This document shows positions 4,779 to 7,184 of a stretch of DNA of 64,000 nucleotides, piece after piece. The translations under genes and the position numbers were made by a program. The number at the start of each line of letters is the position of its first letter. The first letter of the stretch is position 1. The DNA is taken from the sequence record NC_021529.2; one strand, written 5' to 3'. The notes beneath the pieces were generated by a model. It ran no database searches. It worked only from the letters and a program-made list of their open reading frames with translations, and was not told where the DNA came from.

Positions 4779-4818
4779 TACGATTCAAGAGCATTAAGAA
4801 CAGCTTGCAGCTCAGTAA

Positions 4819-5295
4819 CTAAATTAGACAGTTCAATGCGATATTTTTATTCTGACGGATGTCTGATCTCAACGCACCACGTGATGTTTTAATATCAGCA
4901 TCATAATCAGTTGTGAACAGTAACGCCTCAGATAGGTAAATTGCTCGATTTAAGTCTATCGTTAGTTGTCTTAGTTCATCGTTGCGTATTTTTTCTGCTG
5001 GTATTCGCATGTATTTGTCAATTCGCTTCATTACTTGCTTCAGTTCTTTGAAGTGTTGGCGTGCTTTACCACCAGCGAATAGCGAACCGTGAACTAGACC
5101 GCCCAAGCCGCCTGCGATACCACCCCAGATTGCCATTGGTAGTACTAATGCAGGTCCAATGAACGTAACAATTGACGCAAATGTACCAGCAGCAACAGCA
5201 CCAGCAAGCGCAGAACGCTTTGCCCATTGAGTGATTGTTGCTTCGTTTAATGACTTTGATGCTTTATACTCATCAAATGTTTTAATCTTCATCAT
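4819..5295 (-). CDS. Candidate capsid-internal protein with glycine-zipper hydrophobic hairpin
   Basis: Starts MKIKTFDEYKASKSLNE|A (T4 capsid-targeting-like); G/A-rich hydrophobic hairpin; late-promoter-like ACTAAATA upstream. Confidence 0.6.
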   Translation of the reverse strand: MMKIKTFDEYKASKSLNEATITQWAKRSALAGAVAAGTFASIVTFIGPALVLPMAIWGGIAGGLGGLVHGSLFAGGKARQHFKELKQVMKRIDKYMRIPAEKIRNDELRQLTIDLNRAIYLSEALLFTTDYDADIKTSRGALRSDIRQNKNIALNCLI

Positions 5296-5322
5296 TATGC
5301 CTTATAATTGAATTAAAAGAAT

Positions 5323-5391
5323 ATGAGGGGTGCGACTATAGTAGGACCAATACTCGCAGTGACCAATGCGTAACATAGTCACATCCCTCAT
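5323..5391 (-). ncRNA. Putative structured RNA leader (three-way junction)
   Basis: 17-bp outer stem (5323-5339/5375-5391) enclosing two 4-bp hairpins whose loops both carry GACCAA (UUGGUC on the - strand). Confidence 0.5.
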
Positions 5392-5395
5392 CTAT

Positions 5396-5403
5396 TATTT
5401 AGT
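5396..5403 (-). promoter_or_regulatory. T4-late-like promoter variant ACTAAATA
   Basis: Shares the TAAATA core of T4 TATAAATA; predicted +1 falls at about the first base of the stem. Confidence 0.5.
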
Positions 5404-5533
5404 GATACAACACTCAATGTTTTACACTTTTCTGACAATAAAATGAAAGTAATTGCATTGTAAAGTGTAATTTTTATTAACTACATGCGTAAAATTAATT
5501 GAACGCTTAAAAAGTATACAAAAGGACTATCAA

Positions 5534-5950
5534 ATGACTATGAAATCCATCATGCGTGCAGCAAACACACGAGTATCTGAGCTACAAATCTTCCGCGGTG
5601 AGCACAGCACTGTTGTTATGGGTTCAGTTGCGAGTGGTAAGAACGCTATGTTAATGGGAATGCTTGTTCAGCGTGGTGCAAAAGACTGTACGATGATAGT
5701 CACAGAGGCAAATGCATTTGAAATGGCTAGCAAGCTTGGTGATGGTTCATACGTAGTTCGCGGCGGGTTGAGTCTCGAATCACTAATAGAATCAGTATCA
5801 TATGCATGTGCGCAAGAACGTGAACACATCTTTATTGAGCATGTTAATCCGATTCTTGGTCATAACATCGTTGATATTCTTGAATCAATCACAAAGTCAT
5901 TCAACAAGCATCTATATGTTGCTATGCAATCGCCACGAGGTGGTCTATGA
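5534..5950 (+). CDS. Short degenerate P-loop (RecA/DnaB-like) protein
   Basis: VVMGSVASGKN Walker-A-like motif, then hydrophobic strand IVTE and IFIEHV. Confidence 0.4.
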   Translation: MTMKSIMRAANTRVSELQIFRGEHSTVVMGSVASGKNAMLMGMLVQRGAKDCTMIVTEANAFEMASKLGDGSYVVRGGLSLESLIESVSYACAQEREHIFIEHVNPILGHNIVDILESITKSFNKHLYVAMQSPRGGL

Positions 5951-6174
5951 CAAACGACGAGTTATATGACACAATTCTCGTCGATTGGGTAACAGGTGCA
6001 ATGACTCGTAAACTGAGCGACGCACGCGAGAAAGGTCGTCGTGGGTGGAATGACAAGAATGTGTGCTCTATTGACTATCTCTATGAGTTACGCGATAAAG
6101 CACTTAAAGATAATGATCATGTCAGTGTACTGAACTACACTGCAATGATAGCAATTAGAGAGTGTAACAAATGA
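5947..6174 (+). CDS. Small helical protein, possibly all-alpha NTP-pyrophosphatase-like
   Basis: KLSDAREKGRRGW...DHVSVLNYTAMI resembles a recurrent phage helical family (recalled, not searched). Confidence 0.4.
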   Translation: MTNDELYDTILVDWVTGAMTRKLSDAREKGRRGWNDKNVCSIDYLYELRDKALKDNDHVSVLNYTAMIAIRECNK

Positions 6175-7184
6175 ATGTGATGTTCACGAGCCTATTCGGC
6201 TCAAAACTGTATGGCACAGACACGCCAGAGTCAGACACTGACTATAAAGCTGTGTTTATGCCTGAAATGCGTAAGCTATTGCGCGGTGTTGCAATAAAAA
6301 ACTCAGTTCATTCAACTGGTAAGTCGTTCTCTAAGAATGGTGCAGATGATGAAGACTTCGAATACATACCTGTTCAAGTGTTCATGCGTGACTTTCTTGG
6401 CGGACAGTCGTATGCAATCGAGCTTGCATTCAATGCATTACAAAACCCAGATGATTGTACGCCTCAGTTCTACAGCATGTGTGAGCAGCTAACATCACGC
6501 TTCTTGACATCAAACGTCAAAGCAATGACTGGCTATGCACTCAACCAAGCACAGAAGTATGGTATCAAAGGTACACGACTTAACAGTCTAATGGAATTTG
6601 CACGTGCTATAGAGACGCACAACGTCGATTCTAAAGCGAAGTTGGGTTCAAGCCCTGAGTTGTGCAAGCAACTATGGGAACTGTGCTCAGAAGACGCTCA
6701 CGTGCGTTTTCAGTGGTATCATGGCCCCAAGACTACAGACGCAAGCGATTTGCAAGACCCTGCGTTCAGCGTACTTGAGAAGGTATTCGGTCTTGAAATC
6801 TCATTTGAAGAAGCGTCTGGTCGTCTTGAGAAAATGATGAGCAAGTATGGTGCGCGTGCATATCAAGCGCGTGCGGCAAGTGGGTCAGACTGGAAAGCGA
6901 TATCTCATGCAATGCGTGTTATCGATCAAGCGATAGACATCCTTGACAAAGGTAAGCTTGAGTTCCCATTACCTCTTGCGTCGTTCTATCGTGACGTGAA
7001 GCAAGGCAAATACAAGTGGGAATACGTGTCTGAAGTGCTACAAGAACGACTTGAACTGCTTGAAAATGCAAAAGATACAACGAAACTTCCGAATCATACG
7101 CCAGCTCTAGTAGAAGAATTCTACGAATGGTATGATGATTGTCTTGAAGAGTTCTATTTTCCGTGTATAATGACTCGCGAATAA
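6171..7184 (+). CDS. DNA polymerase beta-superfamily nucleotidyltransferase (RlaP/Nuc-transf-like)
   Basis: FGSKLYGTDTPESDTDYKAVF (GS..YG....SDxD) and DWKAISHAMRV. Confidence 0.8.
   Translation: MNVMFTSLFGSKLYGTDTPESDTDYKAVFMPEMRKLLRGVAIKNSVHSTGKSFSKNGADDEDFEYIPVQVFMRDFLGGQSYAIELAFNALQNPDDCTPQFYSMCEQLTSRFLTSNVKAMTGYALNQAQKYGIKGTRLNSLMEFARAIETHNVDSKAKLGSSPELCKQLWELCSEDAHVRFQWYHGPKTTDASDLQDPAFSVLEKVFGLEISFEEASGRLEKMMSKYGARAYQARAASGSDWKAISHAMRVIDQAIDILDKGKLEFPLPLASFYRDVKQGKYKWEYVSEVLQERLELLENAKDTTKLPNHTPALVEEFYEWYDDCLEEFYFPCIMTRE

Follow-up and report, generated by a model that had tools for sequence, protein, structure and literature searches.

A conserved minus-strand element of KVP40-like vibriophages as a candidate late small RNA gene

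Non-coding RNAs known in T4-like phages comprise tRNAs, introns and the small stable RNAs of T4 (species 1 and 2, rnaC/rnaD). To our knowledge, no small RNA driven by a late promoter has been described in these phages, and we know of no antiterminator in them. At T4 late promoters, transcription starts about 6 nt after the promoter box. Short, promoter-proximal transcripts are familiar from phage lambda, where 6S RNA (PR' to tR') and oop RNA each combine a promoter and an intrinsic terminator within about 100 nt, and read-through feeds the downstream gene. Vibrio phage nt-1, the subject of this work, has been described as carrying PeSLs, short hairpins of the form A3-4G3-loop-C3T3-4 that occur in many copies per genome with sigma-70 early promoters (PMC4122927). 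Finally, Y RNAs and YrlA RNAs are recognized by a GNCGAAN0-1G or GGUCCGA motif near the 5' end, together with a TROVE gene on the same strand within about 4 kb (PMC4201824).

Here we describe an element that lies in a 238-bp intergenic gap of nt-1, a KVP40-like myovirus of the T4 type. The window, that is, the whole stretch of 64,000 nt that was analyzed, corresponds to bases 1-64000 of the nt-1 record (NC_021529.2 / HQ317393), with positions 4800-6200 matching at 100%. The gap separates ORF006 (4819-5295, minus strand) from the divergent ORF007 (5534-5950, plus strand), which leads an early operon running on through ORF008 and nrdC.11. Read on the minus strand, the element begins with a late-promoter-like box, ACTAAATA (5396-5403), and a spacer, ATAG. 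These are followed by the 5' strand of a closing stem (ATGAGGG ATGTGACTAT, 5375-5391), a first hairpin (CGCA-TTGGTCAC-TGCG, with UUGGUCAC as RNA loop, 5355-5370), a second hairpin (AGUA-UUGGUCC-UACU, 5340-5354) and the 3' strand of the closing stem (ATAGTCGCAC CCCTCAT, 5323-5339). Directly 3' of the stem, where the nt-1 sequence reads ATTCTTTT, lies a U-rich stretch, AUUCUUUU (5315-5322), which is a putative intrinsic-terminator tail. An invariant core defined by alignment, GGTCAC-N-GCGAGTATTGGT (GGUCAC-N-GCGAGUAUUGGU in RNA), occupies 5346-5364. The original prediction had described this stretch as a 17-bp stem with one wobble and one mismatch that closes two hairpins of different stem but identical loop word, placed between a late box and a gene start, and the nt-1 sequence bears this description out. 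Positions 5391-5375 form a 17-nt arm whose partner is 5339-5323, interrupted by a single A·C mismatch and a single U·G wobble; the minus strand holds two 4-bp hairpins with different stems and the same loop word, the box at 5403-5396 lies 4 nt upstream of the stem, and the ATG of ORF006 at 5295 lies 27 nt past it.

Conservation among relatives had been proposed as a check on the element. By BLAST and position-guided inspection it was found in eight genomes (nt-1, CZ01, QD01, VS1, KVP40, VH7D, F86 and D484), with place and orientation unchanged, and a ninth, 1.081.O, holds a remodelled form of it at the same place. We counted these as seven lineages (nt-1/CZ01, QD01/VS1, KVP40, VH7D, F86, D484 and 1.081.O), in which the KVP40 group and the VH7D/ValKK3 group each count and D484 is the representative examined of the D484/6E35.1a group; VS2 was matched by BLAST only. 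The element is better conserved than the genes that adjoin it. Its CZ01 copy is identical to that of nt-1, and between nt-1 and KVP40 it is the only part of the gap that aligns (87% over 62 nt). The core is identical in six lineages but for one position (N), and in 1.081.O it is without GTA. Across the same phages the ORF007 protein shows 37-72% identity (70% in KVP40, 37% in F86), and ORF006 homologs show 46-51%.

A covariance model built from three sequences scored 38-99 bits in the eight genomes; run on the complete genomes of nt-1, KVP40, F86 and D484, it found a single copy per genome in the minus-strand sense. A PeSL cassette, a repeat and a mobile element were rejected on this copy number. 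The model misses the element of 1.081.O, whose homology is based on position, on the promoter box and on the common words GACTATG, GGTCACTGCGA, TTGGTT and GTCGCGCT. When IMG/VR was scanned with the core pattern, only KVP40 and VH7D were returned, and a related-locus search with ORF007 again gave only these two. The pattern also matched 18 metagenome and 15 prokaryote-genome sequences, by chance, as their contexts are unrelated and their model scores at noise level. With the three scans otherwise empty, the family is confined to this vibriophage clade in the collections searched. In the literature on KVP40 and nt-1 transcriptomes and small RNAs we found nothing on this locus, and none of the papers found reports a transcript of it. 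We propose, at a probability of roughly 0.6, that the element is a non-coding RNA gene on the minus strand, specific to KVP40-like (schizo-T4) vibriophages.

The promoter box is one of the features on which this proposal rests. Its core, CTAAATA, is invariant in all seven lineages, though its surroundings and its distance to the stem vary (3 nt in 1.081.O, 4 nt in nt-1/CZ01, 16 nt in D484 and 24-27 nt elsewhere). In nt-1, the upstream regions of 17 late genes carry TAAATA preceded by TA, CA, TC, AC or AA, and late promoters matching the box stand upstream of gp4, gp19, gp48, gp23 and others; a 13-mer of the gp4 promoter, ACTAAATAATAGA, equals the box of the element plus 5 nt. This 13-mer lies in the divergent late promoter region of gp4 and gp48, at about 109580-109650 of the nt-1 record. 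The box thus has the sequence of a gp55-dependent T4-type late promoter (TATAAATA class), with the TAAATA core and the 5' dinucleotides used by this phage, and its match to the promoters of nt-1 late genes makes it a credible late promoter. Should transcription in nt-1 start about 6 nt after the box, the +1 would be the first or second nucleotide of the stem, consistent with the start that had been predicted there.

At the other end, the closing helix is followed by T6 in KVP40 and VH7D, by CT5 in QD01, VS1 and F86, and by CT4 in D484; in 1.081.O, a separate canonical terminator hairpin takes the place of the U-run. A helix of GAGGG/CCCUC type followed by a U-run has the sequence of an intrinsic terminator, and we predict one here; the tail of nt-1, AUUCUUUU, would be weaker than those of its relatives. 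A simple terminator scan does not call the element because its stem is branched. The same succession of late promoter, hairpin and U-run before a gene is found elsewhere in nt-1, for example upstream of gp9, and so this architecture alone is no proof of a small RNA. The GC-rich closing helix with T5-6 behind it in most lineages could also be read as nothing more than a branched intrinsic terminator, which would guard against stray minus-strand (antisense) transcription and whose RNA product would have no function. We give this reading hardly any credence. No co-directional gene lies upstream to be terminated; what directly precedes the element is a conserved late box; termination does not require a branched interior with a 20-nt invariant core; and 1.081.O adds a separate canonical terminator hairpin directly 3' of the element.

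The relation of the element to ORF006 (4819-5295, minus strand) raises a different alternative. ORF006 encodes a 158-aa predicted membrane protein (phrog_14713). The protein appears to be small and rich in glycine, with two membrane helices and a helical C-terminus. Homologs were detected by genome search in KVP40 and D484 and directly after the element in VH7D and F86, so that in five of the seven lineages (with nt-1) ORF006 starts ~18-35 nt past the element. No other late box lies between the two in these five, which implies that the ORF006 mRNA comes through the element and that the gene is probably expressed by read-through. The element might then be purely a cis-acting 5' leader of ORF006, either a stem-loop stabilizer or an attenuating terminator, with the copies elsewhere being relics. 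Such a leader would limit the expression of a possibly toxic small membrane protein, and the stem of nt-1 starts at about +1, as do 5'-terminal protective hairpins. Against this, genome search found no ORF006 homolog in the whole genomes of QD01, VS1 and 1.081.O, and yet these two independent lineages, QD01/VS1 and 1.081.O, keep box and element intact. The element is therefore not merely the leader of that gene, and what is kept, a promoter, a structured RNA and a terminator, is the layout of a small RNA gene. Further, QD01 and VS1 are identical in the element and have their four differences in the flanks, a count too small for significance, and neither a stabilizer nor a terminator needs a 20-nt invariant interior. 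We judge a purely cis-acting leader unlikely. Where ORF006 is missing in QD01 and VS1, a PeSL-type bidirectional hairpin, AAAGGGGCATTTCTGCCCCTTTT, stands directly after the element (2577-2600 and 1577-1600 in the respective retrieved loci).

The element is nearly palindromic, and yet the pair cells of its alignment comprise 11 G·U against 3 A·C. The U-run is confined to the minus strand, the stem on the plus strand being followed by AAACTG in the relatives; the two observations together indicate a minus-strand RNA. No reading frame is common to the homologs on either strand, because the indels are not multiples of three (QD01 has +1) and the frame differs in F86 and KVP40, and a small peptide was rejected for this lack of a conserved frame. 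Two annotated short ORFs touch the locus: VPHD484_0186 (40 aa, 2770-2892 in its retrieved locus) runs on the strand opposite to the element and overlaps it; VPHF86_0175 (30 aa, 2394-2486 in its retrieved locus) lies upstream of the element and spans the late box. Neither is conserved, and both are probably spurious calls.

Wobble asymmetry, one-sided U-run and frame loss argue against a symmetric DNA operator and against a peptide. A function at the level of DNA would see in the element an imperfect palindrome with direct repeats (TTGGTC, 16 bp apart), bound by a protein of phage or host and controlling the early promoter of the ORF007-nrdC.11 operon, or serving as a mark for recombination or replication. 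The element does always adjoin the ORF007 early promoter region, ORF007 occurs in the same KVP40-like phages, and a protein might bind at the invariant core; on the plus strand, too, the covariance model reaches 33 bits, because the element is nearly palindromic. However, the arms vary freely yet stay complementary, which points to a constraint on pairing and not to half-site recognition. Only one strand tolerates G·U pairs, the promoter box upstream and the U-run downstream are on that same strand, and the element is single-copy, so it is no repeated PeSL recombination cassette. A DNA-level element is accordingly quite improbable to us. A leader or small RNA transcribed from a late promoter, as first suggested, is instead what the invariant CTAAATA, the wobble asymmetry, the U-run and the persistence without ORF006 point to.

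We then consider how such an RNA may fold. The 81-nt stretch has a z-score of -3.4 on the minus strand, where 1 of 200 shuffles folds as well, and of -4.3 on the plus strand. The three-way junction originally predicted (fold 1) is 91% paired over six distinct sequences, and its hairpin 1 is 100% paired in the six. Six of its pairs have changed on both sides, five in helix 1, the long stem, and one in hairpin 1. Slid controls gave no such changes, and in 500 shuffles the observed values were reached 0-2 times, statistics which are thin, as they come from 6-7 distinct sequences of one phage clade whose kinship inflates the shuffle test. The outer stem occurs as ATGAGGG/CCCTCAT, CGAGGG/CCCTCG, CGGGAT/ATCCCG, TGAGGGAG/CTCTCTCA and, in 1.081.O, GTGAGAG/CTTTCAC, and the hairpin 1 stem of F86, CGTT/AGCG, shows one double change and one wobble. 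The stem of hairpin 2 is tentative: it has no covariation, one of its pairs is broken in three of the six sequences, and the D484 sequence does not allow it.

The minimum-energy fold of the nt-1 minus strand given by ViennaRNA differs from fold 1. In this fold 2, the outer 7 nt of the closing stem remain paired (P1a, common to both folds), hairpin A is formed by GUGACUA with UUGGUCAC, and hairpin B by UGCGA with UCGCA plus UAU with AUA. The inner GUGACUA of the 5' strand therefore has two possible partners, the 3' strand in fold 1 and UUGGUCAC in fold 2, and what is the loop of hairpin 1 in fold 1 becomes the 3' strand of hairpin A in fold 2. Fold 2 is 92% paired, with hairpin A at 100%, and has a compensatory change of its own. 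Constrained energies place it below fold 1 by 1-6 kcal/mol in every sequence, and RNAalifold picks it even from an alignment fitted to fold 1. Each fold explains a change that the other does not: an A-to-G change in the 3' strand of F86 and D484 (columns 19-64, U-A to C-G) is explained by fold 1 only, and a U-to-C change in "loop 1" of D484 (columns 20-34, A-U to G-C) by fold 2 only. The closing stem and the three-way-junction layout are thus well supported, and the interior is either bistable or beyond resolution with six or seven sequences. Of the original structure, the covarying closing stem stands, with most of the six two-sided pair changes, while hairpin 2 is without covariation and fold 2 competes with fold 1 at lower energy. 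The identity of the two loop words, true in nt-1, does not hold in relatives, where loop 2 reads UUGGUUC or UUGGUUU; D484 and 1.081.O have CGGUCAC as loop 1. None of the seven lineages departs from the second UUGGU, which hairpin 2 holds and which either fold leaves unpaired or apical.

On the other side of the element, ORF007 (5534-5950, plus strand) encodes a P-loop NTPase-like early protein of 138 aa (phrog_15302) with a Walker-A-like GSVASGKN and no Pfam match; the Atlas model of the protein is similar to minimal P-loop/RecA-type NTPases (TM 0.63-0.69). The occurrence of ORF007 in the phage collection is limited to KVP40-like vibriophages, the same set as the element, which it adjoins in all seven lineages. 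V05 (MT135024.1, a 157-kb record labelled "complete") is the one exception encountered, with ORF007 but no element and with a same-strand gene directly upstream; this record, together with the 349-kb V07 record, suggests an assembly artefact or a rearrangement. Further along the operon, nrdC.11 (6171-7184, plus strand) has a sub-threshold Pfam match to RlaP (PF10127; 20.2 bits against a cut-off of 23). Nucleotidyltransferases of the RlaP family have been shown to extend damaged 3' ends of RNA and tRNA by 1-2 nt (PMC12776372, a 2025 preprint). Together, nrdC.11 and ORF007 could be an RNA-end-processing module beside the element. Two more distant loci of the nt-1 record concern RNA. ORF169 (85410-86846, minus strand), ~80 kb away and annotated as an RNA-binding protein, consists of DUF2828 and DUF7788 (helical repeats and a C-terminal domain) and had no PDB sequence match to Ro60. 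A tRNA nucleotidyltransferase, or CCA-adding enzyme (146453-147555, minus strand), is annotated as the adjacent ORF245 and ORF246, a division that could reflect a frameshift, a split gene or a sequencing error.

It had further been suggested that the loops pair with the NCCA ends of tRNAs in the manner of T-boxes or RNase P. In its explicit form, the UUGGU loops would bind the ACCA 3' ends of uncharged tRNAs, and the RNA would sense or titrate tRNA. In its favor, UGGU complements ACCA, the second UUGGU, as said, is invariant and unpaired or apical in both folds, and nt-1 is rich in tRNA biology, with 29 tRNA genes (PMC4122927), its CCA-adding enzyme and the weak RlaP match of nrdC.11. Nevertheless, complementarity over 4 nt is not evidence by itself. 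No T-box or tRNA-related Rfam match appears even at E <= 10, a specifier loop and a T-box sequence are absent, and hairpin 2 is not conserved as a hairpin. Moreover, loop 1 reads CGGU and not UGGU in D484 and 1.081.O, which weakens the idea of twin ACCA-binding loops, and in D484 this change covaries with the stem strand. Pairing with tRNA ends is for us extremely unlikely; in all probability the element is not a tRNA sensor but a small RNA or leader of a new kind.

A dimeric RNA-binding protein, which had been suggested as the alternative partner, may be one. Other partners were approached through the core. Its complement, ACCAATACTC, was sought in five phage genomes with up to one mismatch and showed no enrichment relative to a reversed control. 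Exact matches are the opposite strand of the element itself in four of the five, and otherwise single unconserved sites in F86 and 1.081.O. By analogy with Y RNAs, which scaffold Ro60, one may imagine a trans-acting, bistable late phage RNA that works with the RNA-end machinery of the phage and acts through UUGGU as a scaffold or decoy for RNA 3' ends. This is a very doubtful reading; candidate partners would be the module of ORF007 and the RlaP-like nrdC.11, the CCA-adding enzyme or the pool of tRNA 3' ends.

Returning to the small RNA gene that we favor, we infer transcription, termination, a switch and any partner from comparative anatomy, and the following course of events may be envisaged. 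RNA polymerase directed by gp55 would start at CTAAATA late in infection. The transcript would fold as a three-way junction whose GC-rich closing helix, with the U-run, would act as an intrinsic terminator, releasing a compact, end-protected RNA of about 75 nt in nt-1 and of about 95-100 nt in KVP40-type phages. The fraction of polymerase that reads through would be the sole visible source of ORF006 mRNA, so that in phages with this gene the element would double as its leader or attenuator. The invariant 20-nt core would be the functional surface, presumably recognized by a conserved protein or RNA partner. Finally, the two mutually exclusive sets of interior helices, which are similar in energy, may switch partner binding or the strength of the terminator.

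Compact, and with clean limits set by a promoter box and a predicted terminator, this small-RNA candidate lends itself to experiment: nt-1 grows on the laboratory host Vibrio natriegens, and the phages that naturally lack ORF006 would allow roles in cis to be told from roles in trans. That a 20-nt core has outlasted the divergence of a neighboring protein to about 37% identity implies a specific partner, and the two alternative folds may offer an example of a phage RNA switch. At a minimum, the element merits annotation and an Rfam family.

The element was compared with known RNA families. A scan of the whole window at the Rfam gathering thresholds gave no match, and neither did nt-1 5280-5440 (161 nt) or its KVP40 homolog give anything relevant at E <= 10, with no T-box, tRNA, tmRNA or Y RNA among the results; the Rfam search that had been proposed as a check therefore assigns the element to no family. 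ARAGORN found no genes in the window, and with the Rfam tRNA model also negative, a tRNA or tRNA-like element was ruled out. A T-box riboswitch was rejected for want of an Rfam match, of a Stem I/specifier loop and of a T-box sequence. So was a Y RNA or YrlA RNA, whose motifs are absent or not conserved in the 5' regions (GAUGAGGG, UUUCGAGGG, UUUCGGGAU and UUUUGAGGG); no TROVE domain occurs among the neighboring genes, within 4 kb.

Several described systems nonetheless resemble the element in part. With the T-box (RF00230) it shares the position of a leader next to a terminator, a UGGN-type word and two alternative foldings; it differs in that the UGGU of its loop 1 is not conserved and that its phages infect Gram-negative Vibrio. 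Y RNAs and YrlA RNAs, which are bound by Ro60 and of which phage-encoded examples exist (PMC4201824, PMC12135203), are likewise of 70-100 nt, with a long end-closing stem interrupted by a mismatch or bulge, a distal hairpin module and a U-rich 3' end. In fold 1, the element recalls three-way junctions of the purine-riboswitch type, with a P1 and two side-by-side hairpins, loops of 7-8 nt, a length of ~70 nt and a terminator tail downstream. Its hairpins, however, are of 4 bp only, two of its three junction strands are empty, it lacks the conserved junction bases, and Rfam gives no match. With PeSLs it has in common a stem-loop with a G3...C3 core by a promoter, in a hyperplastic region of varying gene content (ORF006 present or absent), but it is single-copy, ~70 nt long and branched, and it has a late box. 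Lambda 6S and oop RNAs have no sequence or structure relation to the element, which has a gp55-type late box and a branched junction and is not antisense to genes; they share with it the layout of a short, promoter-proximal terminated transcript.
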